Origin: Monocercomonoides exilis PA203
Taxonomy: Eukaryota > Protista > Preaxostyla
Length of the DNA stretch: 64,000 nt
Reading direction: 5' to 3'
Assembly (NCBI GenBank): GCA_001643675.2
Contig: LSRY02000018.1
Coordinates: 682,001 to 746,000, forward strand
The notes below the pieces were generated by a model. The model was not told where the DNA came from. It ran no database searches and was given only the letters and a program-made list of their open reading frames with translations. The position numbers and the translations under genes were made by a program. Positions within the stretch are counted from its first letter, which is position 1; every line of letters begins with the position of its first letter. Below, in pieces: positions 14,262-58,291 of this stretch.

Positions 14262-15400
14262 TTTCCAGTTTTTTTTGTATCAACTGCGCTAAAAGTGAGC
14301 GTATGAGAAGAAACAAATGTTGAGGTGAGGAGGGTGAGGGAGGCGTCTTGGAGGAGGGAAATGAAACCGTTGAAGACAGGCTCCACCGTGATTCATGTGG
14401 TCTGTTGGGGTCTGCCACAGGCATCAGAATTAATTTCACCATTTGCAACGATTTTGTACTGTGCGATGAGGGGGAGCCAGCCATTGAAAGTTTCATTGTC
14501 AGCTTGTCCATTATTATACACTCTTTTAGTTGGGGCTGTTGAACCGCATTGCTGGAAAGGAGATTGAGTGATGCTGCTTCCATTGAAGAACACATCATTC
14601 CATCTGCCATTTGTTGCAGTGTTGCCATCGAAGAAACAGAATGTGATGAATTTTACTCTATTCATCCAGGAATATGTGTCTCTGAAAAACATTGCAGCAC
14701 CTCCCCATGATGTTGATGAACTTGTTAATTTGTTGTTTATGAACTGGCAATCATCAACCAAAAATTGATTTGGTTTGTTATTCGGAGGCCAATGATATGT
14801 GAGAGAACCAGTTGAATCGCCACCAGAGTTTGCGATGCACTTGCATTTTGTGAACAGGAATTGGCCGTTTGAAGAAAAATCACCAATATAGAAATACAAA
14901 CCAGCTCCACACCAATCAGTTATTGAACAACTTTCCACTCTGTTTTCTGAGAATGAATAAACAGAATTTGTTTGAGGATACCATATTGCAGCAGCTCCTC
15001 CATGAGCAGCTGAGCAGCTTGTGAAATTGGATTTTGTGATATCTATGTTTAGCAAATATGAACATAATAACGCTCCACCATTATCACCACTTGAACGATT
15101 GAAAATAAAACATGATGTGATTTCGAGATTAGCATTTGTGCATTCAACATGAAGCGCTCCTCCCCAATCACTTCCTCCATTTGAATCATTCCATTCGCAC
15201 CACTCGAAGCGATGACTGTTTGCATCGAATAAAGCCTGTTATCCAATTTCTTCACAACCAGTTTCAATTCCAACATGCTAAACAGGACATTTGGTGAAAA
15301 GCTTGCTTGGAATACGAAGTTGTTTGTTCCAAAAAGGAGATCGAATCGAATAAGAGGTGCGGAGACTGGAATGGATGGGAAGAAAAGATGAAAAAGAGAA
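14262..15400 (-). pseudogene. GGA-motif, Cys/Ser/Asn-rich beta-helix-like (Pmp/pectin-lyase-like) surface protein pseudogene, truncated
   Basis: Repeated WGGALHV / NGGALL / HGGAAAI / WGGAAMF and F..C motifs. In-frame stops before and after the 220-aa ORF. Confidence 0.7.
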
Positions 15401-15998
15401 ATCTTTGAAGAAAAATAGACTGAAAAAGTGAATCTTCAAAAAAATATAACAAATATGCAAACAGAAGAGATATTCAAAAATAATCAATTGAACAATAAAA
15501 TGTTAGGGAATGACATCGCAGAGGAATAAAAAATTCGATTGAAAAATGGAAAATCAGAGTATTTTTTAAAAAGTTCAAACTGAAGAAACACGATATACAA
15601 CAATGGACATATAATAATAAACATGATGTCACATCATGAACATTATTGCGCAAAATAGGTGTGGGATCTCTGACTTAAGAGCAATTTATTCAAAATTCTA
15701 AAATGAAATCATTTTATGGGAAATTGAGGATAAATTAAACAATTAAATCTTTTGAAAACAATTCTTTAAATAAATTTTTTTGTTATTGAAATTGTACACT
15801 TAAAAAAAAATTAGATTTCTTGTCAAAAAAAAAAAAAAAGACGTAGAAAAACATCACTGATAGACGTGAAGACAAAAATTTCGTCACGTCACACAGGTTA
15901 AATGAAATGATTGAAGAAAAAGTTTGGAACAAATCTCAGTTTTTTTCAAAACTGATAAAATTTTGCCCTATTTCGTTTTAATAATCATTAAACAGCAT

Positions 15999-16046
15999 GG
16001 GATGATCAACATAAAAATGTTCTAATCTCTTTTTTGGGACAAACTG
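15999..16046. mobile_element. Solo TIR related to the Tc1/IS630 element at 7520-9920 (mirror at ~56569-56616)
   Basis: GGGATGATCAACAT...TTTTTTGGGACAAACTG|TA resembles GGGATGATCTACAT...TTTTTTGGACAGACTG|TA. No partner end found. Confidence 0.6.
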
Positions 16047-16375
16047 TACACACTGTACTTATTTACAAATGCTATTTTACAGTTAATGTCGTTTCGTTAA
16101 TCTCTAATTTTCTATTTGGATATTTTCATCCCAAGAGAACCATCCGATCAGAATCTCCGCTGCCTCAAAGGAGAAATAACAAAGCACATTTTTTTTTCCA
16201 TTATTGATTATCGGAAATGTATAGGAATTTACAGATAGTTTGAACACTGACGTTTTATTGATTTCCTTGAATTATTCTTTTCCTCATTTTTTACTCTCGA
16301 TGCGTTTTGATTTGTATTTAAACGATAAAGTCTGTAGCAATTATTCATCAACTTTTATATTTGGAAAAGCAGAAG

Positions 16376-17783
16376 ATGTACCGCGCAAATCAGTTCATCA
16401 GTTTGCAAGCATTGCCATACATTAAATCTGATTAATGTGATTCTTTTCTTTCTTTTTCAGAAGCATTTTGTGAACTAAGTTATTTAAATGGAGTTGAACA
16501 AAAGCAAAAGATTGAAGAAATGAATGAATTGATGGACAACATGACGATGAAAGAATTTTCATCTATTCTTAAAATTGAAAATTTGGACAGAATAATCGAA
16601 CTGATTGATTTAAATACACTGCCGATGGAAAATGCATTCTTGTTGTTGAAAAACATGGGATACTGGAAAGTGTCAACAGAAACGTGGATTTACGATTTAA
16701 GTGTTTCCATACTTTTCAAAAGATTTGAGAGAATGATTGCTAAAGAAGGGAAGAAAAAGGAAGGAAAGAATGAAAAGCTACTGATTGGTCTTTGCCAATG
16801 CTATATTTTGCTGATTAAGGATGCCTCAAATGAATTAATACCAATTATCGTCCCATGCCTTCTGAATGCCGCCTTAAAGAAAGAGGAAAGTGATGAGGCA
16901 CAAAAGGAGGAGGAAATTACGTTACTGGCTCTAGGTAACTTTAGTAGGTTGGTGGTATGTATATTTCTGAATCATTTCTGATATTTTTTTTGATATTTCT
17001 TTCTCCTTTTACAATTAGAAAATAGAAAAAGAGCTGTATTTGAATGAAATCAAAGAAATCATCAAAAATCATCAAAAGCATCACAATCTGACGCGGCTCG
17101 CCTATCAATCTGCTTGGGAGTTTTTGATAGGCAGATTACCAGATAACAGTTTGGAAGATGTTATTGCGAATGAGCTTCATTTTGCGAGAGAAGCGGCAAG
17201 AGAGCTGGAAGAGTCATCGAGTTGCATGGATTGGAAGAATGAAGATGCATTTGAAGAAAAGAGAATTTCGGAATCGAAAAAAGAATATCACACATTAAAA
17301 TGGCTCAGTGCAATAGACCATTTTTTTTCTTTTTGCGAATTATGGAATGAAGAACTTAGCATTCTTATCGGCAGAGTTTCAAGGATATTTCGGGTGACAA
17401 AGGATAATGGCCATCACTTTAGCGAACATGCAATTCAGTGCTTATACAGTGCGATAGAAAACAGTGCCGTGGGGGTTATTGACTTTTTTAAAAACGGATC
17501 AGTTGATATCATTTTAGAGGAAATGGTTCGATTAGATACAATAACCAAATCAATTGCATTCAGTGTCTATTTTATGAAAGATATTTGCCATGCATTGGAG
17601 TTAAAGATGGAAGAAAAGGAAGAGGAGACAAAACGAAAAATAATGAAAAGAAAGATTTTTGAAAAGATGGAGGAAGAAGGATACGAAAATTTTATCATTG
17701 GGTTATTCCGTTTCACAGTTAAAGAAGATTTATACTCTTATGTTTTGATTGTAAATATCAACGATTTTTTTATTAATTGCTGA
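16376..17783 (+). CDS. Family A member, 3 exons (16376-16400, 16461-16954, 17019-17783)
   Basis: GT-AG introns restore a continuous frame with the same family motifs (HHNLTRLAYQSAW, NELHFAREA, FEKMEEEGYE). Confidence 0.8.
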
Positions 17784-18538
17784 TTTAAGTGCTTCTTGTT
17801 TCACTTCATTTGTGTTTGAACAAGTGCTTTCCACTTTCTTTTCAACGAAAAGAACATATGGCTTTCATATTCGTTGTACAGTTTTGCTTTTCATTCATTA
17901 CATTATCATCATTATCATTATTATTATAATTTAATTGATTAATTAATTGATTGGAAATCTGAATAATTTGGTACAGTTTCATTTTTTTTTTCATTTTTCA
18001 TATCTGTTTTCGCTTCACATTTTGATTCTCCTTAAACAATTGTAAATAAAATGCTTCTGTCTATTGTTGAATCACGATATTGCTAATTGAAGAATTTTGT
18101 GGCAGGCAATTAATCTCTGGAATAGACTACTCTATCATCCATTTCTCATTCTTTAGCCTTTCACACCAAAGCAGTTTCTTTTCTGCTTCAGTGACATCAG
18201 GTTCTTTGAAAACGAAATGATTGAGGAAAAACATTTTTGAAACAAAATTTCAAAGAAGAGGATGTTTGAGATACTGCTCAAATGGGAAAGAATTCATTTT
18301 ATTATTGTTTGTGAAAGCAACAATTCATTTGAGAAAGATTTGTTATAAAAAAGGAAAAATTGCAATATATCATTTTTGTTTTTTGTTTTTAAAATGATTT
18401 ATTACATTTTGAGGTTATAATTTGAGGATTTTTAAATAAACTTTAAAAAGCCCCCACCTTCATTTTTTTTTTTTTTTTTGCCATTTTGTGAAATGATGAA
18501 AAAAGAAAAATAAAAAGAGTAACGAAATATGAAACATT

Positions 18539-20009
18539 TCAGTTGGTTAGATATTTAAAAAATAATCAGAAATATTCAATGATAATGCATTTAAATATTT
18601 TCTATCAAGAAAATCCATTTTTTATGAAAGCTTGCGATGGCATCGTATCCATTTTCTTTCATCTTTTCCAACAACCCCATATTGGCTGCCTTTCTTTTCG
18701 CTTCTCTCTTTTCGAATATTTTCTTTCCTTTCGTTTTTTCTGAAATATTCATAAAAAGGCACCAAGCTTTGGCTTGCCAATTTGCCATTCAACGTTGGCT
18801 GCTGTACCTCCTTAAAAACAGCATTAACTGCTTCTTTGCTCGGCAACTCATCAACTGTGACAACTTCTCTTTCAGCAGCATTTCGAAAGGAACAAATGCA
18901 CAAATTGCTAATTTCACTTTTGTTTTCTCTTGCTGCTCGAAATACCTGTGCAATGCTTCTGACAAATCCAGCAAGTTCTTCATTCCACAACCGAAAGTAT
19001 TCAAAAAAATTAGCCAATGTTTGGATCCATCTCAATAAAATAAATTCTTCTTTTTTCTTTTCCAAACCACACATTTCCACAGCTCTTCTAATTCTCTTGC
19101 TTCTCTCGCAAAATGCAGCTCATTCACAATTGCATCTTCCAAACTTTCATCTCTTGCATGATGCAGCCCATAGACAATGATTCCTTTCAAGATTTTATCG
19201 ATAAAAAATCTGTTAATCAAAAATTTCCAAGCAGACTGATACGCAAGACGAGTCAGATTGTGATGTTCCTGATGATATTTGATAATCTCTTTGATTTTAT
19301 CCTGGAAAAGTTCTCTTTCAACACTCAATTCAAAAATTTTTAAAATGAAAATAAATGAAATTAAAAATTATTCTATAAACAAACAAGCAAAATGGGCATA
19401 CAACCAGCTTCCCAATGTTTCTCAAAGTCAGAAAAGCCATTTCCACTTCTTTTTGAGTTTCTTCGTTTTCTTCCTTGTTCAATGCAACCTTCAGAAGGAG
19501 AAGCACACAAATCGATAATAATTCAGGTGGAAACAGGCTGCTAAGCAAAAGATAGCACTCGCAAAGATCAACAAAAAGCTTTTCATTTTTCCCTTCTTTC
19601 TTCTTATCTTCGTCAATTATCATCTTTTCAACTCTTTTTTTCAATTTAGAATAAAAAAATCCACTACTCCATATATTCTTCGATGCTTTGAAACATCCAG
19701 CACGCTTCAACAGACAAGTGCGTTATCCATTGATATTTTCTTTTCTTCAATCATTTTGGATATTTTGTTGGCAGCTCTACCGTGAAAACGGACTTGATTT
19801 CTTCTTGCCAATCTCTTCTACTTGTTCCTTCATTTCTTTTATTTTAATTTTTTATTTTTGTTTTTCCTCATCGCAATCTTTCAGTTCTTCAAACAATTCT
19901 TCAATAAAAAATAAAAAAAGGAAATCCAATTGACATGAAATCAAGTACAACAATGATGCAAACCAGTAAATCTTTCAGTTACGTTAATTTTCTTCATTTT
20001 TGAAAACAT
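18539..20009 (-). pseudogene. Family A pseudogene
   Basis: Family motifs spread over several frames, with stops and frameshifts. Confidence 0.8.
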
Positions 20010-21522
20010 AGCTTTCAGAAAACAACACTATTTTAATCATTCACATTGAAAGCGTTTTCGATTGGATTGAAGATATAGATGAAAAATAAAAATTCAAAAA
20101 GACCATAGAAATATACTCATTTATACTATATATGTATATATATATATTATATATTAACATTTTTGATTTGTAATTACAAAGATAAAGAACGCTTTGTTTT
20201 TTCTGTTTGTTATAATGGATGTAATGATCGAATCATTTTATTTGACTGGAATATCCGTCCACGAAATGAGAGAACGGTGAGCGAACATTCCCTGTAGAAT
20301 TAGAAATATCCTTTTCTGTGATATCAGCTAGTATGATGGCAATGCATCGACTTTGGATTTCTATCTGAAAATATTTGGAAATTTGCTAACCCAAGAAAAA
20401 CAGCAATTTTATTAATAACACAAAAGATGTAATGCATGTAATTTTTATTGTTCTATTTATTTCGAAGATGATTCTATTTTTGACCTTTCCAAAGTCTAGG
20501 AATATGAGTTATTGTTGAAATGGCCAGTCCCCGCTTTGGAGAGCTATACTATGAGAATGGAGCAGATTATTATATGGCAATTAAGAAATAAATGAAGTTA
20601 CGCAAGATGTATGATTTTCATAATTTTTATTTGGTGCAAGAGATGAAAACATATCCAACTGTTATTTTATTGAATGAAGACAAAAGATGATCTAGTTCAA
20701 TGAGAAAATAATATCTGCACAAAATTATATAGAATTTAGGAACATATGGCAGAAGAGCGGTTTTTTGGCAAGGAAAGTGGCTGGCAAAATGGAAAGCAGG
20801 ATAAAAAATTACGAAAAAGGAAAGAATTCAACGAAAAAAAGGATAATACCAAAATGTTGATATAATTTCAAAAGTTTTTCTGTTTCTCTGACTGCGCCAG
20901 ACAGATATGGAAAGCGAAGAAATTCTATCTTTGATTTCGCTTTCGAACCAAGAGAATGGAGAAACGCCATCGAAGATACATCCTATAATCGAATATTTAT
21001 CGGCAATCAAAGGGCATTCAGGTCAGCCGCATCTTGATTTCATTCTTCGAAGAGACAGCCATTTTGAGTGAGCAAGGTGATTATTGTTCGAGGTTAATTT
21101 TCTTTATCACCACGGCAGATGAAAGAGAATTTGATGGTTTTTGTTTTCATCGTTTGTTTTTCAACAAAGCCGTTGTTTCGCTCAGTTTCTATGTTTGTTC
21201 ATGGTCCTTTGAATTTTGCGCCTTTGAGCATCAGAGGATGCATAACGGGCAATTTGTTATTTTCTGAATGAGCATCGATGAATGAATGCCAACTTTTCCA
21301 TCATTTTTCCTCCTCGTTGTTGAAATGCAACAAACTCATTTTATTCGTTTTCATCAGGGATCATCCTCACATTCTGCAACTTAGTTGACTTTTTATGTTT
21401 TTTAATCATACATGTCTAAGAGTCATGCACTTCAAACGCAGATATTAAAATTCTTGTTTTTTTCTTCCGGTCCATTTCGTTTGCTTCAATCATCCAATCA
21501 TCATCTTCATTATTTTTACAAT

Positions 21523-21624
21523 CTCCTCTTCCTCTTCCTTCTCCTCTTCCTTCTCCTCTTCCTTCTCCTCTTCCTTCTCCTCTTCCTTCTCCTCTTCCTT
21601 CTCCTCTTCCTTCTCCTCTTCCTT
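21523..21624 (+). repeat. 12-bp tandem repeat (CTCCTCTTCCTT)n; mirror at ~51009-51098 is one unit shorter
   Basis: Seen directly. Overlapping ORFs differ by 4 aa (150 vs 146). Confidence 0.9.
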
Positions 21625-21918
21625 CTTCTTTCTCTCGCCTTTCCTTTATTTTCAATTATTTTCGTTCCATTTTCGTCTGGTTGCATGGATTTGTTGTCTT
21701 TGCCTTTGCCTTTTCCTATTCCCATCCTCCACAACATTTTCCTCACTCTCTCTCCCAAGGCATTCACACACAATCCTCTTCAGTTCTATTGGCTGTTTCA
21801 ATTCAGAGCCGCTTGCATCGATTCTGCGGGAAACAATCTGTTTGGAAGTGGAAGGAATATTTGAGGGGGAAGGTGGCTTATGTGCCTCAGGTGCTAAAGT
21901 TAGAAAAAATAAAATGTG

Positions 21919-21951
<33 letters not shown>

Positions 21952-22092
21952 TTTGTTTGTTTGTTTGTTTGTTATTTAAAATGGCCTGTTGAGTTATTTC
22001 ATGGGGGAAAAAAGAAAGAAATACAAGTATCACAAAATTTAAAAAAAATTTTTTTGGTGATAGCACATAATTTTTTTTTGTTGTCATTTCAA

Positions 22093-23207
22093 ATGTCCAA
22101 AACTGTAAGAAGCCAGGAAAGAAGGTTCAGCACGAATAATGAAAGGATGCATTTCATTTCATCTTCGTCAAAATTTCCCATCGTCAAAAAATTGCATGCA
22201 TCAAAACTTAAGGGAAAAGTGCCGTCCAATGAAAAAACTACGATTTTTTCAAGTGCTACACCTGATACTTCAAAAAATTGGATGGAGGCGAAATCGAAAC
22301 ATTTGATTGACATTACAAGCACCGTCGATCAAAAGCACAATGAGAAACTTTATGAAAGAGGAAGCGAGAAACCAAATATCTCCAATTTGGCAGTTTTTCA
22401 TTTGAAACAAAAAAGCCTTCTTGAAAAGATGCATTACACTAAGGAAAAATGCAATGACTTGCTGCGAGACATGACGATCGCGACACACGAAGACGATTTA
22501 TCCGATTTTCATGATATAAGTGAAGATTTTGACATGACAAATACAGAAAAGGTGAAAACTGACGAAGGGTCAAATGAACTTACATGGATGCCCCACGCAA
22601 ATGATGCTCTCGAAGAAGAGAGGCATGTGAGGAAAGCACCCAAAGTTTTTCGAAAGAAAATTTTTCCTGAAGCTATTGCTTCGAGCAAAACTGGACTTGA
22701 AAAACTCGTGAATTCAATTTCATCTGCGAATCTAACTTGCACAGAAGGAGGAGAGGTATCTCAGATTTATATTAAAGTTTATTTTATTTTATTTTATTCA
22801 TTTTTTACATACTTATTTAAAAATCATTCTCATTTCTTAATTAGTTAAAATATGTCACTGATCTTCTTAACCAATATTACTTGTGGGGTCAATCTGTTGC
22901 ACCTTCTTTTTCCTTTGCAACATTTCTGAGTAAACTTGAAGCTTTGCATTCCAACGAACTAATTAGGGTGTGTCATCAATCAGTTTCATACTTCAATTTT
23001 TCATAATTTATAACTTAAAATTATTTTCTTTTGTATTTGATGAATAAAACACGAGCACAGACTTCCCTCTCTAATCTTTCTAGTCGGCTCCTTGCAGTTT
23101 CACGGAGACGCACTTCTTTGAGTAATTTTCCGATTGGTGAAGAACTTATTGAGCAAGAGCCGGAGATTGATGATGGCGAGGCGTTTATTGAGAAAGAAGA
23201 AAGTTAA
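22093..23207 (+). CDS. TIPIN: TIPIN/Csm3/Swi3-like replication fork protection protein; 3 exons (22093-22755, 22845-22967, 23061-23207), 310 aa
   Basis: Two phase-0 GT-AG introns give an open frame. RKKIFPEAIASSKTGLEKLVNSISSANLTCTEGGE|LKYVTDLLNQYYLWGQSVAPSFSFATFLSKLEALHSNELIR|TSLSNL follows the Swi3-domain pattern (GL..L; E...L..LL..Y..W....P...F..F...E.L). Recognised by eye, not by HMM. Confidence 0.75.
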
Positions 23208-23707
23208 TGAAGTGCTTTTTTCATCTCAATATTATTATTTCTATTACTATTATTTTGAATAAAGCTAATATTTCATGAACATATGATATTTATTTTATAA
23301 AATTTTCATTTCATTCAAAACATTCAAATTGTTTTTGAGTTTTTGAAAAAATAATCATCTTTTTCGAAATTCAACAATTTTTAACGAAGTCTTGTTTTAA
23401 ACAAATTATAAAATTCAGGGCAAAGGAATGAATGCATATTTCACCATCCCCAAGTTGAGCCATTTCAATGACAAACAGAATTGAATGAAATAAAACAAAG
23501 TTGAATCAAAAAGCAAGCACTGCTTCGCTCTGAACAATTTGGATCACAAACGCTAATATATGCAAAAGTTCTTTCAACAAAATTTTCCATTTTAAATGAA
23601 TTCTTTTCTTTTCCTGTTGTGTTGCTAATCCATTCAGAACAATTTTTCATGAAAGAATAAGAAAATGCAATAAAAACTTCGAATTATAAATATTTTTTCA
23701 GTCAGGT

Positions 23708-25735
23708 TTGAAATTCATCAATATCACGAGGATTGCTTTCCATAAGAACGCAACGCTGGCTTTTTCTGTTTCATCATTCTTTCATTCAGCTCACAATCCC
23801 ATTGAATGCGCCATCTTCTCTTCCTTCAAGATATCTTTCATCCACCAAACATGCTCTTTGCTAAATGTTGTTAAACTATATGTCGGAACTGAATCTCACG
23901 AAAAACACCTAGAAGAATGACTTCGCTTGATGCAAAAAGCCATCACTTTGAGTGATGCGAACAAGAAAAATACAAATGGTGGATCAAATCATAGAGGTGC
24001 GCTTCATGTTGAATGCAAAAATGCAAATCTCACAATCACTTCGTGCTCATTCAACAATTGTTCAAATGCCAATGATGGAGTGTCGTAATTGGTTCAAATT
24101 TTGTGAAATGTGTTCATTGCAAAATCCAATATCACAAGTTGCTCTGAGTTTCATGGAAGAACGAATTGCACAGCTTGGCCCTAATCCACTTCTGATTGGT
24201 TATTCTCGGAAAACAAAGTTGAAAATTGGAAAATAACAGGTGATTGTGGAACTGGTTGGCATTTCGTTCTCGACAACATGCCATTCGATTCAAAAGTTCA
24301 ATTTAAAAAATGTCAGCATATTACTAATATAGGCAGCAATGCGGCAGGGACAATAACGTTTCATTTTGCTCCACCAGAAAAATCGTTTCCATTTTTTCTT
24401 GAAAAGAATCAATTCATCAGTAAAATATTAGCAAATTCACAATATAATTGTGGTGCTGTGCTATGCCACACAACGATTTATAATTGGATAAGTGGAACAA
24501 AATTCATCTCGTTTTGTTTCTTCAATGGCAACTCTTCTGCATGTTACAGACAAAACAATATGTTATTCAGCAGAAGCACATCAAATCTCCATTCAACCGG
24601 CACATATCAATGAAATACACCAAAATGAGTGTGAAATAACAATATATCTTACAGTGAGACTTTCAACAGTTGGGTTCCCATCATCGCCCAGAGTTAACTT
24701 GTTGCCAGCAATGGAACTGATGCTGATGCCTGTGGCAGACCCCAACAAACCCCATGTGCCACCATCGAGTATGCCCTCAACGGCTTCATTTCCCTCCTCC
24801 AAGACTCCTCTCTCACCCTCCTCACCTCAACATTTGTTCCCATTCAAACACTCACTTTCAGCGCCATTGACACCAAACTCACTAGAAATGGAACAACTTC
24901 CACAGCCATAGCCTTCAGTGGTGCAACAATCAAACTCATATTTACAATCATCACAATCAACATCATCAACATCTTCTTCACCAGATCCATCTGCCTTGTC
25001 TGCCCTCTCCATCGCCCACAACTCCACAAACCCCATCACCCCCATTCTCTTCCACCTCTCCGAAAATTCCCCTTCCCTCAACCTCAACACAACCACCATC
25101 ACCGGAACAACCTCCATAACAATTAAAACTCCCCTCTTCTTCCTCACTGCTGGCTCCCTCGCCCTCAACCACACAGCAATCACCAGTCTCACCCTCAACA
25201 GCCAAAGCATCTTCCACCTCACCTCCCTCACCGCTCCACTCACCCTTAACTCATCCAACATCACCAATATCACCTCCACAGCCATCCCCGCCAGCTGCAT
25301 CCTCTCCTCTGCAACCACCCCTGCCCTCTCCCTCTCCCCCGCCAACTGCACCATGATCAACATCGACTCAGAACAGTTGAGCCAACAGACTCCCACCAAT
25401 GGCGGGTGCATCTCATTCGCCTCATCTGCCCCTGCCAACTCCTTTTCGGTAACACCACCTTTTCCACCTGCTCTGCGAGCGAGGATACAAGTTCTGGAGG
25501 AAGAGGCGGTGCTCTCATGATCGAGTACAAGGATGATTCAGAAGTGTCATCCACAACCTTTTCCATCACCAATATCGTGTTTTCAGCCAACAAGGCCAGT
25601 GTCGGAAGAGATATGTATTTTGTGTGCGAAACATTTGTCGCTTCTGTGAAGGAACCCTTGTTCGCCTTCATGGGAAACATCACTCAGAAAGACAATTCAG
25701 TTGTTGGACATGACAGAACAGAAGCAAATGGAATT
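23708..25735 (+). pseudogene. GGA-motif beta-helix-like surface protein pseudogene (paralogue of 14262-15400)
   Basis: Nucleotide similarity to the 14.3-15.4 kb gene (CGCTTCATGTTGAATGCA; GATGCCTGTGGCAGACCCCAACA). Ser/Thr-rich segment, NGGCI and RGGAL motifs, many frameshifts. Confidence 0.7.
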
Positions 25736-26859
25736 TCGATTAATAAATCTTTATCAACGGGCATGCAGCTGAATGAATGCGTGGAAAACATTCTTGGTAT
25801 CAAAGCAATGTATTTCTGGCCATCAAAGATGTCATGCAAGAGCACACAACGCGATGGGTCTTCTGAGGAAGGTGCAGATCGTAAGGCAGAAATCATTTCA
25901 TCATCTGACTTGTCGGTGAATTTACGTGCAAGTGACGACAAGGTCGAAGAAAGTTGGGGAGATGGCACACAAAATTGAAGAAAACATCTCATATGTGCAT
26001 TTGATGAAATCGGCATTGCTTGTCGGGCATTTATTCTCTTCTTTCATAGAATTTCTCTTCAAATATGTCTTTCCTCAAAAGCTCTTTCCTTCATCGGTTC
26101 ATTTTCTGCAACTTGTTGAAGATTTGTGACCTTGCGTAACCTGCCGAATGATATTTTGGAACTCATCCATTTCAATAAATCATTGTTCTAATACTCTTTC
26201 TTTTTGTCTGTGCCTCTTTCAGTTTCCTGATGAAAAGGCAAAATTGTCCTCCATTTTTATTGTACACGTTCCGATCAGCTTTTTCCAGCTCAAAATAATA
26301 TTCATTTCATTGACATATAATTTCGGTTAATATTCTGCGAATGTATGCATTAAAAATTCGTTTTACACTTCTGAATATAAACAATCCGCAAATCCTAAAA
26401 TTTTTTAAAAAAGAAGTTTCATGAGCACATAATATCAACATCATTATTATCTTCAAAATTAATTGGCCGAAAAATGAGAAGAATATAAAAAAAAAAAAAG
26501 AAAAGAAAAGAAAAAATGAATAATAAAATATATTATAATACAAAAAAATATGAGTGTGAAAGGAAATAAAATTATTAAATAGAAAAAAACAAAAGAATGA
26601 GATAAAAAAGAAGAAGAAGAAGAAGAAAAAGTGGAAGTTGAATGAGTAGAAAAAGGTGAATGAGAAGAAAAAGGTGAATGAAAAGGTGAAGAAGAAGGTG
26701 AAAAAGATGATGAAGGTGAAGAAGAAGAAGAAGGGCAAAAAAGAGAAGGAAAAGAATGATCTGTTTGACAAGAGAAGAATCCGCTATGACTGAACAGAGT
26801 TAGGCATTCCATCTCTTGTTTCTGAAAGAGAATTATCTGCGTTGTCCTGTCTAGCCAAT

Positions 26860-43900: not shown

Positions 43901-43933
<33 letters not shown>

Positions 43934-45760: not shown

Positions 45761-46886
45761 ATTGGCTAGACAGGACAACGCAGATAATTCTCTTTCAGAA
45801 ACAAGAGATGGAATGCCTAACTCTGTTCAGTCATAGCGGATTCTTCTCTTGTCAAACAGATCATTCTTTTCCTTCTCTTTTTTGCCCTTCTTCTTCTTCT
45901 TCACCTTCATCATCTTTTTCACCTTCTTCTTCACCTTTTCATTCACCTTTTTCTTCTCATTCACCTTTTTCTACTCATTCAACTTCCACTTTTTCTTCTT
46001 CTTCTTCTTCTTTTTTATCTCATTCTTTTGTTTTTTTCTATTTAATAATTTTATTTCCTTTCACACTCATATTTTTTTGTATTATAATATATTTTATTAT
46101 TCATTTTTTCTTTTCTTTTCTTTTTTTTTTTTTATATTCTTCTCATTTTTCGGCCAATTAATTTTGAAGATAATAATGATGTTGATATTATGTGCTCATG
46201 AAACTTCTTTTTTAAAAAATTTTAGGATTTGCGGATTGTTTATATTCAGAAGTGTAAAACGAATTTTTAATGCATACATTCGCAGAATATTAACCGAAAT
46301 TATATGTCAATGAAATGAATATTATTTTGAGCTGGAAAAAGCTGATCGGAACGTGTACAATAAAAATGGAGGACAATTTTGCCTTTTTCATCAGGAAACT
46401 GAAAGAGGCACAGACAAAAAAGAAAGAGTATTAGAACAATGATTTATTGAAATGGATGAGTTCCAAAATATCATTCGGCAGGTTACGCAAGGTCACAAAT
46501 CTTCAACAAGTTGCAGAAAATGAACCGATGAAGGAAAGAGCTTTTGAGGAAAGACATATTTGAAGAGAAATTCTATGAAAGAAGAGAATAAATGCCCGAC
46601 AAGCAATGCCGATTTCATCAAATGCACATATGAGATGTTTTCTTCAATTTTGTGTGCCATCTCCCCAACTTTCTTCGACCTTGTCGTCACTTGCACGTAA
46701 ATTCACCGACAAGTCAGATGATGAAATGATTTCTGCCTTACGATCTGCACCTTCCTCAGAAGACCCATCGCGTTGTGTGCTCTTGCATGACATCTTTGAT
46801 GGCCAGAAATACATTGCTTTGATACCAAGAATGTTTTCCACGCATTCATTCAGCTGCATGCCCGTTGATAAAGATTTATTAATCGA

Positions 46887-48913
46887 AATTCCATTTGCTT
46901 CTGTTCTGTCATGTCCAACAACTGAATTGTCTTTCTGAGTGATGTTTCCCATGAAGGCGAACAAGGGTTCCTTCACAGAAGCGACAAATGTTTCGCACAC
47001 AAAATACATATCTCTTCCGACACTGGCCTTGTTGGCTGAAAACACGATATTGGTGATGGAAAAGGTTGTGGATGACACTTCTGAATCATCCTTGTACTCG
47101 ATCATGAGAGCACCGCCTCTTCCTCCAGAACTTGTATCCTCGCTCGCAGAGCAGGTGGAAAAGGTGGTGTTACCGAAAAGGAGTTGGCAGGGGCAGATGA
47201 GGCGAATGAGATGCACCCGCCATTGGTGGGAGTCTGTTGGCTCAACTGTTCTGAGTCGATGTTGATCATGGTGCAGTTGGCGGGGGAGAGGGAGAGGGCA
47301 GGGGTGGTTGCAGAGGAGAGGATGCAGCTGGCGGGGATGGCTGTGGAGGTGATATTGGTGATGTTGGATGAGTTAAGGGTGAGTGGAGCGGTGAGGGAGG
47401 TGAGGTGGAAGATGCTTTGGCTGTTGAGGGTGAGACTGGTGATTGCTGTGTGGTTGAGGGCGAGGGAGCCAGCAGTGAGGAAGAAGAGGGGAGTTTTAAT
47501 TGTTATGGAGGTTGTTCCGGTGATGGTGGTTGTGTTGAGGTTGAGGGAAGGGGAATTTTCGGAGAGGTGGAAGAGAATGGGGGTGATGGGGTTTGTGGAG
47601 TTGTGGGCGATGGAGAGGGCAGACAAGGCAGATGGATCTGGTGAAGAAGATGTTGATGATGTTGATTGTGATGATTGTAAATATGAGTTTGATTGTTGCA
47701 CCACTGAAGGCTATGGCTGTGGAAGTTGTTCCATTTCTAGTGAGTTTGGTGTCAATGGCGCTGAAAGTGAGTGTTTGAATGGGAACAAATGTTGAGGTGA
47801 GGAGGGTGAGAGAGGAGTCTTGGAGGAGGGAAATGAAGCCGTTGAGGGCATACTCGATGGTGGCACATGGGGTTTGTTGGGGTCTGCCACAGGCATCAGC
47901 ATCAGTTCCATTGCTGGCAACAAGTTAACTCTGGGCGATGATGGGAACCCAACTGTTGAAAGTCTCACTGTAAGATATATTGTTATTTCACACTCATTTT
48001 GGTGTATTTCATTGATATGTGCCGGTTGAATGGAGATTTGATGTGCTTCTGCTGAATAACATATTGTTTTGTCTGTAACATGCAGAAGAGTTGCCATTGA
48101 AGAAACAAAACGAGATGAATTTTGTTCCACTTATCCAATTATAAATCGTTGTGTGGCATAGCACAGCACCACAATTATATTGTGAATTTGCTAATATTTT
48201 ACTGATGAATTGATTCTTTTCAAGAAAAAATGGAAACGATTTTTCTGGTGGAGCAAAATGAAACGTTATTGTCCCTGCCGCATTGCTGCCTATATTAGTA
48301 ATATGCTGACATTTTTTAAATTGAACTTTTGAATCGAATGGCATGTTGTCGAGAACGAAATGCCAACCAGTTCCACAATCACCTGTTATTTTCCAATTTT
48401 CAACTTTGTTTTCCGAGAATAACCAATCAGAAGTGGATTAGGGCCAAGCTGTGCAATTCGTTCTTCCATGAAACTCAGAGCAACTTGTGATATTGGATTT
48501 TGCAATGAACACATTTCACAAAATTTGAACCAATTACGACACTCCATCATTGGCATTTGAACAATTGTTGAATGAGCACGAAGTGATTGTGAGATTTGCA
48601 TTTTTGCATTCAACATGAAGCGCACCTCTATGATTTGATCCACCATTTGTATTTTCTTGTTCGCATCACTCAAAGTGATGGCTTTTTGCATCAAGCGAAG
48701 TCATTCTTCTAGGTGTTTTTCGTGAGATTCAGTTCCGACATATAGTTTAACAACATTTAGCAAAGAGCATGTTTGGTGGATGAAAGATATCTTGAAGGAA
48801 GAGAAGATGGCGCATTCAATGGGATTGTGAGCTGAATGAAAGAATGATGAAACAGAAAAAGCCAGCGTTGCGTTCTTATGGAAAGCAATCCTCGTGATAT
48901 TGATGAATTTCAA
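46887..48913 (-). pseudogene. GGA-motif surface protein pseudogene (mirror of 23708-25735)
   Basis: Mirror ORFs. Confidence 0.7.
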
Positions 48914-49413
48914 ACCTGACTGAAAAAATATTTATAATTCGAAGTTTTTATTGCATTTTCTTATTCTTTCATGAAAAATTGTTCTGAATGGATTAGCAAC
49001 ACAACAGGAAAAGAAAAGAATTCATTTAAAATGGAAAATTTTGTTGAAAGAACTTTTGCATATATTAGCGTTTGTGATCCAAATTGTTCAGAGCGAAGCA
49101 GTGCTTGCTTTTTGATTCAACTTTGTTTTATTTCATTCAATTCTGTTTGTCATTGAAATGGCTCAACTTGGGGATGGTGAAATATGCATTCATTCCTTTG
49201 CCCTGAATTTTATAATTTGTTTAAAACAAGACTTCGTTAAAAATTGTTGAATTTCGAAAAAGATGATTATTTTTTCAAAAACTCAAAAACAATTTGAATG
49301 TTTTGAATGAAATGAAAATTTTATAAAATAAATATCATATGTTCATGAAATATTAGCTTTATTCAAAATAATAGTAATAGAAATAATAATATTGAGATGA
49401 AAAAAGCACTTCA

Positions 49414-50528
49414 TTAACTTTCTTCTTTCTCAATAAACGCCTCGCCATCATCAATCTCCGGCTCTTGCTCAATAAGTTCTTCACCAATCGGAAAATTACT
49501 CAAAGAAGTGCGTCTCCGTGAAACTGCAAGGAGCCGACTAGAAAGATTAGAGAGGGAAGTCTGTGCTCGTGTTTTATTCATCAAATACAAAAGAAAATAA
49601 TTTTAAGTTATAAATTATGAAAAATTGAAGTATGAAACTGATTGATGACACACCCTAATTAGTTCGTTGGAATGCAAAGCTTCAAGTTTACTCAGAAATG
49701 TTGCAAAGGAAAAAGAAGGTGCAACAGATTGACCCCACAAGTAATATTGGTTAAGAAGATCAGTGACATATTTTAACTAATTAAGAAATGAGAATGATTT
49801 TTAAATAAGTATGTAAAAAATGAATAAAATAAAATAAAATAAACTTTAATATAAATCTGAGATACCTCTCCTCCTTCTGTGCAAGTTAGATTCGCAGATG
49901 AAATTGAATTCACGAGTTTTTCAAGTCCAGTTTTGCTCGAAGCAATAGCTTCAGGAAAAATTTTCTTTCGAAAAACTTTGGGTGCTTTCCTCACATGCCT
50001 CTCTTCTTCGAGAGCATCATTTGCGTGGGGCATCCATGTAAGTTCATTTGACCCTTCGTCAGTTTTCACCTTTTCTGTATTTGTCATGTCAAAATCTTCA
50101 CTTATATCATGAAAATCGGATAAATCGTCTTCGTGTGTCGCGATCGTCATGTCTCGCAGCAAGTCATTGCATTTTTCCTTAGTGTAATGCATCTTTTCAA
50201 GAAGGCTTTTTTGTTTCAAATGAAAAACTGCCAAATTGGAGATATTTGGTTTCTCGCTTCCTCTTTCATAAAGTTTCTCATTGTGCTTTTGATCGACGGT
50301 GCTTGTAATGTCAATCAAATGTTTCGATTTCGCCTCCATCCAATTTTTTGAAGTATCAGGTGTAGCACTTGAAAAAATCGTAGTTTTTTCATTGGACGGC
50401 ACTTTTCCCTTAAGTTTTGATGCATGCAATTTTTTGACGATGGGAAATTTTGACGAAGATGAAATGAAATGCATCCTTTCATTATTCGTGCTGAACCTTC
50501 TTTCCTGGCTTCTTACAGTTTTGGACAT
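49414..50528 (-). CDS. TIPIN: TIPIN/Csm3/Swi3-like protein (mirror copy)
   Basis: Reverse complement of 22093-23207 with the same exon-1 translation. Confidence 0.75.
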
Positions 50529-50665
50529 TTGAAATGACAACAAAAAAAAATTATGTGCTATCACCAAAAAAATTTTTTTTAAATTTTGTGATACTTGTAT
50601 TTCTTTCTTTTTTCCCCCATGAAATAACTCAACAGGCCATTTTAAATAACAAACAAACAAACAAA

Positions 50666-50714
<49 letters not shown>

Positions 50715-52610
50715 CACATTTTATTTTTTCTAACTTTAGCACCTGAGGCACATAAGCCACCTTCCCCCTCAAATATTCCTTCCACTTCCAAACAGATTGT
50801 TTCCCGCAGAATCGATGCAAGCGGCTCTGAATTGAAACAGCCAATAGAACTGAAGAGGATTGTGTGTGAATGCCTTGGGAGAGAGAGTGAGGAAAATGTT
50901 GTGGAGGATGGGAATAGGAAAAGGCAAAGGCAAAGACAACAAATCCATGCAACCAGACGAAAATGGAACGAAAATAATTGAAAATAAAGGAAAGGCGAGA
51001 GAAAGAAGAAGGAAGAGGAGAAGGAAGAGGAGAAGGAAGAGGAGAAGGAAGAGGAGAAGGAAGAGGAGAAGGAAGAGGAGAAGGAAGAGGAAGAGGAGAT
51101 TGTAAAAATAATGAAGATGATGATTGGATGATTGAAGCAAACGAAATGGACCGGAAGAAAAAAACAAGAATTTTAATATCTGCGTTTGAAGTGCATGACT
51201 CTTAGACATGTATGATTAAAAAACATAAAAAGTCAACTAAGTTGCAGAATGTGAGGATGATCCCTGATGAAAACGAATAAAATGAGTTTGTTGCATTTCA
51301 ACAACGAGGAGGAAAAATGATGGAAAAGTTGGCATTCATTCATCGATGCTCATTCAGAAAATAACAAATTGCCCGTTATGCATCCTCTGATGCTCAAAGG
51401 CGCAAAATTCAAAGGACCATGAACAAACATAGAAACTGAGCGAAACAACGGCTTTGTTGAAAAACAAACGATGAAAACAAAAACCATCAAATTCTCTTTC
51501 ATCTGCCGTGGTGATAAAGAAAATTAACCTCGAACAATAATCACCTTGCTCACTCAAAATGGCTGTCTCTTCGAAGAATGAAATCAAGATGCGGCTGACC
51601 TGAATGCCCTTTGATTGCCGATAAATATTCGATTATAGGATGTATCTTCGATGGCGTTTCTCCATTCTCTTGGTTCGAAAGCGAAATCAAAGATAGAATT
51701 TCTTCGCTTTCCATATCTGTCTGGCGCAGTCAGAGAAACAGAAAAACTTTTGAAATTATATCAACATTTTGGTATTATCCTTTTTTCGTTGAATTCTTTC
51801 CTTTTTCGTAATTTTTTTATCCTGCTTTCCATTTTGCCAGCCACTTTCCTTGCCAAAAACCGCTCTTCTGCCATATGTTCCTAAATTCTATATAATTTTG
51901 TGCAGATATTATTTTCTCATTGAACTAGATCATCTTTTGTCTTCATTCAATAAAATAACAGTTGGATATGTTTTCATCTCTTGCACCAAATAAAAATTAT
52001 GAAAATCATACATCTTGCGTAACTTCATTTATTTCTTAATTGCCATATAATAATCTGCTCCATTCTCATAGTATAGCTCTCCAAAGCGGGGACTGGCCAT
52101 TTCAACAATAACTCATATTCCTAGACTTTGGAAAGGTCAAAAATAGAATCATCTTCGAAATAAATAGAACAATAAAAATTACATGCATTACATCTTTTGT
52201 GTTATTAATAAAATTGCTGTTTTTCTTGGGTTAGCAAATTTCCAAATATTTTCAGATAGAAATCCAAAGTCGATGCATTGCCATCATACTAGCTGATATC
52301 ACAGAAAAGGATATTTCTAATTCTACAGGGAATGTTCGCTCACCGTTCTCTCATTTCGTGGACGGATATTCCAGTCAAATAAAATGATTCGATCATTACA
52401 TCCATTATAACAAACAGAAAAAACAAAGCGTTCTTTATCTTTGTAATTACAAATCAAAAATGTTAATATATAATATATATATATACATATATAGTATAAA
52501 TGAGTATATTTCTATGGTCTTTTTGAATTTTTATTTTTCATCTATATCTTCAATCCAATCGAAAACGCTTTCAATGTGAATGATTAAAATAGTGTTGTTT
52601 TCTGAAAGCT

Positions 52611-54079
52611 ATGTTTTCAAAAATGAAGAAAATTAACGTAACTGAAAGATTTACTGGTTTGCATCATTGTTGTACTTGATTTCATGTCAATTGGATTTCC
52701 TTTTTTTTATTTTTTATTGAAGAATTGTTTGAAGAACTGAAAGATTGCGATGAGGAAAAACAAAAATAAAAAATTAAAATAAAAGAAATGAAGGAACAAG
52801 TAGAAGAGATTGGCAAGAAGAAATCAAGTCCGTTTTCACGGTAGAGCTGCCAACAAAATATCCAAAATGATTGAAGAAAAGAAAATATCAATGGATAACG
52901 CACTTGTCTGTTGAAGCGTGCTGGATGTTTCAAAGCATCGAAGAATATATGGAGTAGTGGATTTTTTTATTCTAAATTGAAAAAAAGAGTTGAAAAGATG
53001 ATAATTGACGAAGATAAGAAGAAAGAAGGGAAAAATGAAAAGCTTTTTGTTGATCTTTGCGAGTGCTATCTTTTGCTTAGCAGCCTGTTTCCACCTGAAT
53101 TATTATCGATTTGTGTGCTTCTCCTTCTGAAGGTTGCATTGAACAAGGAAGAAAACGAAGAAACTCAAAAAGAAGTGGAAATGGCTTTTCTGACTTTGAG
53201 AAACATTGGGAAGCTGGTTGTATGCCCATTTTGCTTGTTTGTTTATAGAATAATTTTTAATTTCATTTATTTTCATTTTAAAAATTTTTGAATTGAGTGT
53301 TGAAAGAGAACTTTTCCAGGATAAAATCAAAGAGATTATCAAATATCATCAGGAACATCACAATCTGACTCGTCTTGCGTATCAGTCTGCTTGGAAATTT
53401 TTGATTAACAGATTTTTTATCGATAAAATCTTGAAAGGAATCATTGTCTATGGGCTGCATCATGCAAGAGATGAAAGTTTGGAAGATGCAATTGTGAATG
53501 AGCTGCATTTTGCGAGAGAAGCAAGAGAATTAGAAGAGCTGTGGAAATGTGTGGTTTGGAAAAGAAAAAAGAAGAATTTATTTTATTGAGATGGATCCAA
53601 ACATTGGCTAATTTTTTTGAATACTTTCGGTTGTGGAATGAAGAACTTGCTGGATTTGTCAGAAGCATTGCACAGGTATTTCGAGCAGCAAGAGAAAACA
53701 AAAGTGAAATTAGCAATTTGTGCATTTGTTCCTTTCGAAATGCTGCTGAAAGAGAAGTTGTCACAGTTGATGAGTTGCCGAGCAAAGAAGCAGTTAATGC
53801 TGTTTTTAAGGAGGTACAGCAGCCAACGTTGAATGGCAAATTGGCAAGCCAAAGCTTGGTGCCTTTTATGAATATTTCAGAAAAACGAAAGGAAAGAAAA
53901 TATTCGAAAAGAGAGAAGCGAAAAGAAAGGCAGCCAATATGGGGTTGTTGGAAAAGATGAAAGAAAATGGATACGATGCCATCGCAAGCTTTCATAAAAA
54001 TGGATTTTCTTGATAGAAAATATTTAAATGCATTATCATTGAATATTTCTGATTATTTTTTAAATATCTAACCAACTGA
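52611..54079 (+). pseudogene. Family A pseudogene (mirror)
   Basis: Reverse complement of 18539-20009. Confidence 0.8.
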
Positions 54080-54832
54080 AATGTTTCATATTTCGTTACT
54101 CTTTTTATTTTTCTTTTTTCATCATTTCACAAAATGGCAAAAAAAAAAAAAAATGAAGGTGGGGGCTTTTTAAAGTTTATTTAAAAATCCTCAAATTATA
54201 ACCTCAAAATGTAATAAATCATTTTAAAAACAAAAAACAAAAATGATATATTGCAATTTTTCCTTTTTTATAACAAATCTTTCTCAAATGAATTGTTGCT
54301 TTCACAAACAATAATAAAATGAATTCTTTCCCATTTGAGCAGTATCTCAAACATCCTCTTCTTTGAAATTTTGTTTCAAAAATGTTTTTCCTCAATCATT
54401 TCGTTTTCAAAGAACCTGATGTCACTGAAGCAGAAAAGAAACTGCTTTGGTGTGAAAGGCTAAAGAATGAGAAATGGATGATAGAGTAGTCTATTCCAGA
54501 GATTAATTGCCTGCCACAAAATTCTTCAATTAGCAATATCGTGATTCAACAATAGACAGAAGCATTTTATTTACAATTGTTTAAGGAGAATCAAAATGTG
54601 AAGCGAAAACAGATATGAAAAATGAAAAAAAAAATGAAACTGTACCAAATTATTCAGATTTCCAATCAATTAATTAATCAATTAAATTATAATAATAATG
54701 ATAATGATGATAATGTAATGAATGAAAAGCAAAACTGTACAACGAATATGAAAGCCATATGTTCTTTTCGTTGAAAAGAAAGTGGAAAGCACTTGTTCAA
54801 ACACAAATGAAGTGAAACAAGAAGCACTTAAA

Positions 54833-56239
54833 TCAGCAATTAATAAAAAAATCGTTGATATTTACAATCAAAACATAAGAGTATAAATCTTCTTTAACTG
54901 TGAAACGGAATAACCCAATGATAAAATTTTCGTATCCTTCTTCCTCCATCTTTTCAAAAATCTTTCTTTTCATTATTTTTCGTTTTGTCTCCTCTTCCTT
55001 TTCTTCCATCTTTAACTCCAATGCATGGCAAATATCTTTCATAAAATAGACACTGAATGCAATTGATTTGGTTATTGTATCTAATCGAACCATTTCCTCT
55101 AAAATGATATCAACTGATCCGTTTTTAAAAAGTCAATAACCCCCACGGCACTGTTTTCTATCGCACTGTATAAGCACTGAATTGCATGTTCGCTAAAGTG
55201 ATGGCCATTATCCTTTGTCACCCGAAATATCCTTGAAACTCTGCCGATAAGAATGCTAAGTTCTTCATTCCATAATTCGCAAAAAGAAAAAAAATGGTCT
55301 ATTGCACTGAGCCATTTTAATGTGTGATATTCTTTTTTCGATTCCGAAATTCTCTTTTCTTCAAATGCATCTTCATTCTTCCAATCCATGCAACTCGATG
55401 ACTCTTCCAGCTCTCTTGCCGCTTCTCTCGCAAAATGAAGCTCATTCGCAATAACATCTTCCAAACTGTTATCTGGTAATCTGCCTATCAAAAACTCCCA
55501 AGCAGATTGATAGGCGAGCCGCGTCAGATTGTGATGCTTTTGATGATTTTTGATGATTTCTTTGATTTCATTCAAATACAGCTCTTTTTCTATTTTCTAA
55601 TTGTAAAAGGAGAAAGAAATATCAAAAAAAATATCAGAAATGATTCAGAAATATACATACCACCAACCTACTAAAGTTACCTAGAGCCAGTAACGTAATT
55701 TCCTCCTCCTTTTGTGCCTCATCACTTTCCTCTTTCTTTAAGGCGGCATTCAGAAGGCATGGGACGATAATTGGTATTAATTCATTTGAGGCATCCTTAA
55801 TCAGCAAAATATAGCATTGGCAAAGACCAATCAGTAGCTTTTCATTCTTTCCTTCCTTTTTCTTCCCTTCTTTAGCAATCATTCTCTCAAATCTTTTGAA
55901 AAGTATGGAAACACTTAAATCGTAAATCCACGTTTCTGTTGACACTTTCCAGTATCCCATGTTTTTCAACAACAAGAATGCATTTTCCATCGGCAGTGTA
56001 TTTAAATCAATCAGTTCGATTATTCTGTCCAAATTTTCAATTTTAAGAATAGATGAAAATTCTTTCATCGTCATGTTGTCCATCAATTCATTCATTTCTT
56101 CAATCTTTTGCTTTTGTTCAACTCCATTTAAATAACTTAGTTCACAAAATGCTTCTGAAAAAGAAAGAAAAGAATCACATTAATCAGATTTAATGTATGG
56201 CAATGCTTGCAAACTGATGAACTGATTTGCGCGGTACAT
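54833..56239 (-). CDS. Family A member (mirror of 16376-17783) with a 1-bp homopolymer frameshift near 55130
   Basis: Last exon is split into 55099..55575 and 54833..55093. This may be a sequencing error. Confidence 0.65.
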
Positions 56240-57216
56240 CTTCTGCTTTTCCAAATATAAAAGTTGATGAATAATTGCTACAGACTTTATCGTTTAAATA
56301 CAAATCAAAACGCATCGAGAGTAAAAAATGAGGAAAAGAATAATTCAAGGAAATCAATAAAACGTCAGTGTTCAAACTATCTGTAAATTCCTATACATTT
56401 CCGATAATCAATAATGGAAAAAAAAATGTGCTTTGTTATTTCTCCTTTGAGGCAGCGGAGATTCTGATCGGATGGTTCTCTTGGGATGAAAATATCCAAA
56501 TAGAAAATTAGAGATTAACGAAACGACATTAACTGTAAAATAGCATTTGTAAATAAGTACAGTGTGTACAGTTTGTCCCAAAAAAGAGATTAGAACATTT
56601 TTATGTTGATCATCCCATGCTGTTTAATGATTATTAAAACGAAATAGGGCAAAATTTTATCAGTTTTGAAAAAAACTGAGATTTGTTCCAAACTTTTTCT
56701 TCAATCATTTCATTTAACCTGTGTGACGTGACGAAATTTTTGTCTTCACGTCTATCAGTGATGTTTTTCTACGTCTTTTTTTTTTTTTTTTTGACAAGAA
56801 ATCTAATTTTTTTTTAAGTGTACAATTTCAATAACAAAAAAATTTATTTAAAGAATTGTTTTCAAAAGATTTAATTGTTTAATTTATCCTCAATTTCCCA
56901 TAAAATGATTTCATTTTAGAATTTTGAATAAATTGCTCTTAAGTCAGAGATCCCACACCTATTTTGCGCAATAATGTTCATGATGTGACATCATGTTTAT
57001 TATTATATGTCCATTGTTGTATATCGTGTTTCTTCAGTTTGAACTTTTTAAAAAATACTCTGATTTTCCATTTTTCAATCGAATTTTTTATTCCTCTGCG
57101 ATGTCATTCCCTAACATTTTATTGTTCAATTGATTATTTTTGAATATCTCTTCTGTTTGCATATTTGTTATATTTTTTTGAAGATTCACTTTTTCAGTCT
57201 ATTTTTCTTCAAAGAT

Positions 57217-58291
57217 TTCTCTTTTTCATCTTTTCTTCCCATCCATTCCAGTCTCCGCACCTCTTATTCGATTCGATCTCCTTTTTGGAACAAACAACTT
57301 CGTATTCCAAGCAAGCTTTTCACCAAATGTCCTGTTTAGCATGTTGGAATTGAAACTGGTTGTGAAGAAATTGGATAACAGGCTTTATTCGATGCAAACA
57401 GTCATCGCTTCGAGTGGTGCGAATGGAATGATTCAAATGGAGGAAGTGATTGGGGAGGAGCGCTTCATGTTGAATGCACAAATGCTAATCTCGAAATCAC
57501 ATCATGTTTTATTTTCAATCGTTCAAGTGGTGATAATGGTGGAGCGTTATTATGTTCATATTTGCTAAACATAGATATCACAAAATCCAATTTCACAAGC
57601 TGCTCAGCTGCTCATGGAGGAGCTGCTGCAATATGGTATCCTCAAACAAATTCTGTTTATTCATTCTCAGAAAACAGAGTGGAAAGTTGTTCAATAACTG
57701 ATTGGTGTGGAGCTGGTTTGTATTTCTATATTGGTGATTTTTCTTCAAACGGCCAATTCCTGTTCACAAAATGCAAGTGCATCGCAAACTCTGGTGGCGA
57801 TTCAACTGGTTCTCTCACATATCATTGGCCTCCGAATAACAAACCAAATCAATTTTTGGTTGATGATTGCCAGTTCATAAACAACAAATTAACAAGTTCA
57901 TCAACATCATGGGGAGGTGCTGCAATGTTTTTCAGAGACACATATTCCTGGATGAATAGAGTAAAATTCATCACATTCTGTTTCTTCGATGGCAACACTG
58001 CAACAAATGGCAGATGGAATGATGTGTTCTTCAATGGAAGCAGCATCACTCAATCTCCTTTCCAGCAATGCGGTTCAACAGCCCCAACTAAAAGAGTGTA
58101 TAATAATGGACAAGCTGACAATGAAACTTTCAATGGCTGGCTCCCCCTCATCGCACAGTACAAAATCGTTGCAAATGGTGAAATTAATTCTGATGCCTGT
58201 GGCAGACCCCAACAGACCACATGAATCACGGTGGAGCCTGTCTTCAACGGTTTCATTTCCCTCCTCCAAGACGCCTCCCTCACCCTCCTCA
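57217..58291 (+). pseudogene. GGA-motif beta-helix-like pseudogene (mirror), cut by the palindrome end
   Basis: Same 220-aa ORF at 57562..58224. Confidence 0.7.

Follow-up and report, generated by a model that had tools for sequence, protein, structure and literature searches.

We analyzed a 64,000-nucleotide stretch of the Monocercomonoides exilis PA203 genome (contig LSRY02000018.1; C12:682001–746000; referred to as the window), which lies in the middle of a contig of ~1.6 Mb in an assembly of 82,301,135 bp and 101 contigs. The window contains a 44-kb near-perfect palindrome with a single miniature inverted-repeat transposable element (MITE) at its axis. The palindrome is probably the product of a recent fold-back inverted duplication within one chromosome, seeded by the MITE and closed by recombination between two members, E1 and E2, of one gene family. 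The locus belongs to an already known class of rearrangement, the fold-back inverted duplication; what is added here is the support from short-read depth, the in-register chimeric outer junction and the identification of the parental arm.

When the window was compared with itself, a single dominant inverted pair was found (14322–36268 versus 36351–58295), and over the 21,981 columns of the alignment the two arms were 99.66% identical, with 4 mismatches and 33 gap openings. The perfect mirror tract stops at 14326 and 58291, and BLAST extends it by 4 nt more through one mismatch. An earlier note on this DNA had described a near-perfect palindrome with exactly these limits, as well as a 242-bp centre. 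The latter corresponds to the whole MITE (36186–36433, 248 bp), whereas the strictly non-mirrored spacer is only 82 nt. The palindrome and its pivot consist of the following parts.

14326..36185, + strand: left arm, 21.9 kb, the putative parental copy; mirrors 36434–58291, and its outermost gene is coherent into the left flank.
36434..58291, − strand: right arm, the putative inverted copy; ends in a chimeric gene-family junction.
36186..36433, + strand: central MITE, complete, 248 bp, the pivot of the palindrome; imperfect inverted ends of ~83 nt.
36269..36350, + strand: asymmetric loop of the central MITE, 82 nt; the sole non-mirrored sequence at the axis.
29647..29894, + strand: arm copy of the central MITE's family, 99% identical to the centre; mirror at 42720–42967.

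All differences between the arms were listed, which gave 36 blocks. Nearly all of these were changes in the length of A/T homopolymers or in the number of microsatellite units, and the largest was 12 nt. The four mismatches were confined to the boundary, two microsatellites and the naturally imperfect part of the stem of the central MITE, and there was no substitution in ordinary arm sequence. Neither 21.9-kb arm contains a transposon insertion of its own, and no arm-specific insertion is longer than 12 nt. Outside the palindrome, the sequence is non-mirrored on either side, in agreement with the unique sequence that the earlier note had placed on both outer sides, and the two flanks displayed no similarity to each other beyond tails of ~70 nt. 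The right flank is single-copy, and the inner part of the arm (30000–36185) is present in the whole 82-Mb assembly as just two mirrored copies. A plastid or other organelle inverted repeat and an rDNA palindrome were also considered and were ruled out; the tRNA and Rfam scans of the window were empty.

The element at the axis is short and non-coding, has terminal inverted repeats and occurs in high copy number, as expected of a MITE. A first look at the genome gave 1014 candidates for the family, and the 40 copies that were scored, including the three in the window, were all at least 84% identical. The segment 36170–36450 (281 nt, i.e. the MITE plus 16–17 arm bases on each side) folded as single-stranded DNA with an energy of −105.9 kcal/mol (z = −23). 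The central MITE aligned from end to end with the copy at 42720–42967 with 99% identity, and the orientation of the loop and the internal asymmetries of the stem were the same in the two copies. Since the centre matches the arm copy in these respects, the pivot is an ordinary element that existed before the palindrome and not a product of it. Among the 37 closest other copies of the MITE, none lies on the axis of a palindrome with mirrored flanks, so that the association with the palindrome reflects an event and not a property of the element.

The three copies in the window are 99% identical to one another and the remaining scored copies at most 88%, so that the trio forms a locally young subfamily, perhaps with a recent local transposition 6.3 kb from the pivot. 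The arm copy has TA at both sides; at the centre the right flank merely mirrors the left and is hence uninformative. A TA target-site duplication would point to the Tc1/mariner or Stowaway type. A terminal T/G difference between the central and the arm MITE was considered as a sign of stem repair and was rejected, as the one further family copy in the alignment, at 8251–8501, has T at both ends; the G at the terminus of the arm copy looks private to that copy. The locus at 8251–9810 consists of a diverged copy of the MITE family (78%) beside open reading frames (ORFs) with a weak Tc3-type transposase helix-turn-helix (HTH) signal, and it may hint at an autonomous partner of the MITE. Elsewhere in the genome (L053, G000:C29:1019294–1023541), another MITE copy is bordered, at a distance of ~1.4 kb each way, by inverted arms of at least 632 nt with 100% identity. 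These arms are separated by a spacer of ~2.9 kb, and the axis is ~19 nt away from the centre of the MITE; L053 may be a further palindrome, with a wider spacer, or else a transposon that has long inverted ends.

At the outer ends, the outermost 1 kb of each arm (14322–15310 and 57307–58295) belongs to a large gene family with many copies on contig C25. Protein matches of the family were found in M. exilis only, and there was a weak beta-helix signal (Pfam Beta_helix, E = 0.0095). The elements at the two boundaries are the following.

13473..15310, − strand: E1, a gene of the M. exilis-specific family; the body lies within the left arm and the tail outside it, in the left flank.
57307..58365, + strand: chimeric right-hand family copy; mirrored E1 body to 58291 and divergent E2 tail from 58292.
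58426..61474, + strand: repeat element in the right flank, adjoining the E2 tail; copies 85–90% identical on contig C29.

Fifteen copies of the family were aligned to both boundaries. Family copies cross the left boundary with 69–78% identity, and the family homology continues in frame for ~70 nt into each flank. The body of E1 is of subtype B, 81–82% identical to the copies L020–L023, and the left tail is of subtype B as well (75–81% identity). The right tail, which is unique in the genome, displayed 53–56% identity to subtype B and 60–65% to the other subtype; its mean identity to the 15 copies was 58.8%, whereas shuffles gave 27.5 ± 4.3%. The right tail keeps both frame and register, is translated into a sequence that conforms to the family motif, and has 57% identity to the left tail. 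Since the left tail matches the subtype of the body, E1 is a coherent gene and probably the parental one. In contrast, the subtype of the right tail differs from that of the body, and the right-hand copy is thus an in-register chimera with its novel junction at 58291/58292. Both E copies have an in-frame TGA 24 codons before the boundary (14393–14395 and 58222–58224), at a position where members of the family read Pro-Cys-Ala-Thr-Ile-Glu, which indicates from the reading frame that the E gene is truncated, or a pseudogene, upstream of the junction. On contig C25, dozens of copies of this E/beta-helix family are clustered at ~1.27–2.5 Mb, some of them as close pairs of opposite orientation, e.g. 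2500382(+)/2505541(−) and 2050411(−)/2065189(+).

The identity of the arms ends within an inverted pair of paralogues with diverged homology beyond. This could also be the picture of an older palindrome, or an older inverted gene pair, the arms of which have been kept identical by arm-to-arm gene conversion, the boundary being the limit of the conversion tract. However, the homology past the boundary extends for only ~70 nt and is of family level (the two tails are 57% identical), the flanks show no further relationship, and the older, diverged mirror homology expected from such a history was not found. The right tail is of a different subtype than the body, as in a chimera and not in a decayed twin. 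Furthermore, 21.9 kb free of arm-specific transposon insertions would be unexpected for an old structure in a transposon-rich genome, and the spacer amounts to just 82 nt inside a MITE, the closest relative of which is located 6.3 kb away and is 99% identical. Taken together, it is quite unlikely that gene conversion in an older structure accounts for the palindrome.

To compare the arms with the flank, Logan contigs (k = 31) from four short-read runs, X1–X4, all of one sample and one study, were matched to 56001–62000, and depth was compared among the perfectly matching contigs. In X1, the k-mer depths of the arm contigs were 80.8, 71.1, 77.8 and 97.5, and those of the right-flank contigs 45.4, 35.3, 44.3 and 42.8. 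In X2, the arm contigs had depths of 196.7 and 176, and the right-flank contigs 92.5, 109.9 and 122.9. The mean depth was thus ~82 in the arm versus 42 in the right flank (X1) and ~186 versus 108 (X2), i.e. ~1.7–2.0-fold higher in the arm. Since a de Bruijn graph collapses both arms into one, a two-fold depth means that each copy has the full coverage of the flank. The arms therefore do not have the per-copy half depth that the earlier note had named as a sign against a true duplication. The ~2:1 contig depth suggests that the palindrome is fixed, or nearly so, in the culture line.

The junction at 58291 was also looked for in the same data. Contigs in three of the runs begin k − 1 = 30 nt inside the arm and enter the right flank (58266/7–58601). 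We rejected these contigs as short-read proof of the junction, with which they are only consistent, because the overlap is common to paralogues. The loose contig ends at 58289–58295 were paralogues of the L020, L021 and L027 types and not the left flank.

The other possibility raised in the earlier note was an artefact, in which a fold-back Nanopore read (template-complement or snap-back) or a mis-join by Canu has created a false mirror copy. The published PA203 assembly was made from Nanopore reads with Canu 1.8 (corMinCoverage 0), Porechop, Nanopolish and ten rounds of Pilon (PMC8767320). Two facts are in line with an artefact: Canu was run with corMinCoverage = 0, and the arms differ from each other in the manner of Nanopore errors. 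On the other hand, the short-read k-mer depth of the arm is ~2× that of the flank, unique sequence extends for hundreds of kb on both sides, and the assembly contains no alternative neighbour for the MITE or the inner arm, e.g. at a contig end. The outer junction is a natural-looking in-frame join of family members with an identity of ~80% or less, which is too diverged for an overlap mis-join, and the axis is the loop of a MITE, neither an adapter nor the end of a fragment. The homopolymer noise is accounted for by a published polishing problem: according to the authors of the assembly, multi-copy parts are less well polished, as short reads map ambiguously there (PMC8767320). An artefact is thus very improbable, and the duplication is in all likelihood real.

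A perfect 22-kb repeat suffers from exactly this weakness of polishing, and the 33 indels between the arms are therefore most likely consensus noise from Nanopore homopolymer errors and not divergence. Mirror ORFs differ between the arms because of such indels, as exemplified by an ORF of 247 aa (17040–17783) with a mirror of 158 aa (55099–55575). The earlier note spoke of about a dozen doubled genes and pseudogenes; some of its 'pseudogenes' probably reflect homopolymer errors in arms that are under-polished. In the published genome paper there is no mention of palindromes or of MITEs (PMC8767320).

The anatomy of the locus, the doubled copy number of the arm and the chimera at the right junction are observed; from them we infer the strand-level steps and the initiating lesion as follows. 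A break or a stalled fork would have occurred nearby, to the right of the MITE, and the two inverted ends of this one MITE would have paired within a single DNA strand, giving the first junction. Synthesis would then have run back along the block just copied, leaving at the axis a single MITE together with its asymmetric loop. About 22 kb further out, the new inverted copy of E1 would have undergone recombination or a template switch, in register, with E2, a diverged family member of the opposite orientation that would have adjoined the right flank already before the event. The sequence between the MITE and E2, together with the body of E2, would have been lost. In this version, the simplest for the locus, all steps take place in a single chromosome, and the limits of the copied tract would have been set by two pairings, that of the MITE ends and that of the inverted E1/E2 pair. 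The order resulting from these steps, which is the order found, is left flank, E1, the 21.9-kb block, MITE, the inverted block and right flank.

Fold-back is favoured because an asymmetric element is present once at the axis, the arms start at its ends, and the second junction lies at a dispersed homology. The locus has the features that define this class: near-identical adjacent inverted arms, a pre-existing inverted repeat at the axis with the spacer kept once, an arm copy number of ~2× (with contig depth as the proxy) and a distal homology-mediated junction. Thus, the proposal of the earlier note that the palindrome is a recent duplication by fold-back priming is supported by the ~2× depth of the arms, the in-register family junctions and the lack of an alternative neighbour, while classical breakage-fusion-bridge, the other origin of long palindromes that the note named, does not fit one asymmetric MITE at the centre.

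A duplication that is real but arose by another route could be due to fusion of sister-chromatid ends, as in breakage-fusion-bridge, or to aberrant (alternative) transposition involving the MITE ends of sister chromatids. Recent local activity of the MITE subfamily is suggested by its three copies with 99% identity (at most 88% elsewhere), and a cut by transposase at the element could have been the initiating lesion. However, such routes predict either zero or two head-to-head MITEs at the axis, and one intact element with an asymmetric loop was found. The right flank is single-copy, which also disfavours the capture of a duplicated chromosome arm, and there is no signature of telomere capture. 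We consider a route of this kind highly unlikely.

Several points weigh against a MITE-seeded fold-back duplication as described above. Contig depth is a proxy and not copy number, and all the short-read runs are from the assembly's own strain. The low-coverage runs X3 and X4 lean the same way as X1 and X2 but are noisy. The 30-nt arm overlap of the junction contigs is common to paralogues (e.g. L020) and thus not specific for the arm. Contigs of k = 31 cannot resolve the 83-nt inverted repeat, and no raw read was seen across the centre. The assignment of the parental and the copied arm depends on 68 nt of tail, and the ancestral arrangement is shown by no outgroup.

The block that was duplicated contains the following genes and gene-family members, in addition to several small repeat elements.

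21916..23207, + strand: Swi3/TIPIN-like gene MONOS_14327; ORF 88% identical, Pfam PF07962; mirror at ~49410–50700.
23817..26296, + strand: second copy of a large repeated gene family; G+C-rich (0.44); mirror at ~46320–48800.
17040..17783, + strand: ORF of a very large M. exilis family; 238 matches, the best being MONOS_18611 at 96%.

The mirror ORF of the Swi3/TIPIN-like gene is located at 49773–50717, and a paralogue with 78% identity to MONOS_14327, MONOS_9023, is present on another contig. The segment 23817–26296 gave dozens of matches at 75–85% identity, mostly on contig C25, and a part of it (24618–24889) is 75% complementary to E1. The family of the ORF at 17040–17783 is probably transposon-borne. 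Pfam searches with 20 ORFs were nearly uninformative, yielding only weak signals for Beta_helix, a Tc3-type transposase HTH (in the left flank) and DUF7307.

Fold-back inversions have been established experimentally in Saccharomyces cerevisiae. In the accounts of Li, Putnam and Kolodner (2020; PMC7467729) and Al-Zain et al. (2023; PMC10622511), a short inverted repeat close to a break folds into a single-strand hairpin, from which synthesis is self-primed; its spacer is retained in the middle of the resulting large inverted duplication, and the product is stabilized by a second, homology-mediated rearrangement at dispersed repeats. The ends of the MITE in M. exilis correspond to the hairpin repeat of yeast, and the gene-family pair to the site of the second rearrangement. 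The yeast events, however, arose under laboratory selection, for the most part in sae2 or mre11 mutants, with translocation or telomere capture as a frequent outcome, whereas the 44-kb palindrome is interstitial and was found in a wild-type culture line, with a transposon as the hairpin and a homeologous second junction (~60–80% identity).

In humans, Hermetz et al. (2014; PMC3907307) have described large inverted duplications that are explained by fold-back; these share with the present locus a short single-copy spacer that separates the arms. In general, human cases of this type are usually terminal, with a distal deletion and kilobase spacers, whereas the M. exilis palindrome is interstitial and has an 82-nt spacer. 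In the programmed rDNA palindrome of Tetrahymena and the linear amplicons of Leishmania, giant palindromic DNA is seeded by a short inverted repeat adjoining a break or by dispersed repeat elements of inverted orientation, but the products are extrachromosomal and either programmed or drug-selected; the present locus is a single duplication on a chromosome, and nothing points to an amplification to more than two copies. The palindromes of sex chromosomes, e.g. those of mammals, which are maintained by gene conversion, resemble it in having gene-bearing arms of tens of kb with more than 99.9% identity. Their spacers are, however, large and unique, and they are of great evolutionary age and common to several species, while the M. 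exilis palindrome has a MITE loop as its spacer, unrelated flanks and a chimeric right boundary.

It can be asked whether MITE-seeded fold-back recurrently creates new gene copies throughout the genome of M. exilis, promoted by a weakness specific to this lineage in the opening of hairpin-capped ends. We regard this as a tentative and rather doubtful idea. A six-frame search of the genome with the Pfam SAE2 (Sae2/CtIP) domain gave no match, but the controls were prokaryotic and the search is thus uninformative. A DNA-binding domain of Mre11 is present (G000:C34:391148–391327, within an open frame of 594 aa), and the main text of a paper on the DNA-processing genes of metamonads mentions none of Sae2, CtIP and Mre11. 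A proneness of M. exilis to fold-back, e.g. through loss of Sae2/CtIP, is speculative, as its only basis is the uninformative negative result of the domain search. If the route were recurrent, it would feed the expansion and the tail-swapping of the large beta-helix and receptor gene families.

For users of the assembly, gene models in perfectly duplicated parts are unreliable, and differences between the arms that make a gene model look like a pseudogene should not be trusted. For the biology of the organism, the palindrome is a clean natural case of a rearrangement whose known examples come for the most part from yeast mutants, tumours and human patients, and both of its junctions can be read to the base, one as a transposon-hairpin pivot and the other as an in-frame join of diverged family members. 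It indicates that small transposons can duplicate gene blocks of 20 kb in one step, here including a gene for replication-fork protection (Swi3/TIPIN-like), and that such events create chimeric members of gene families.

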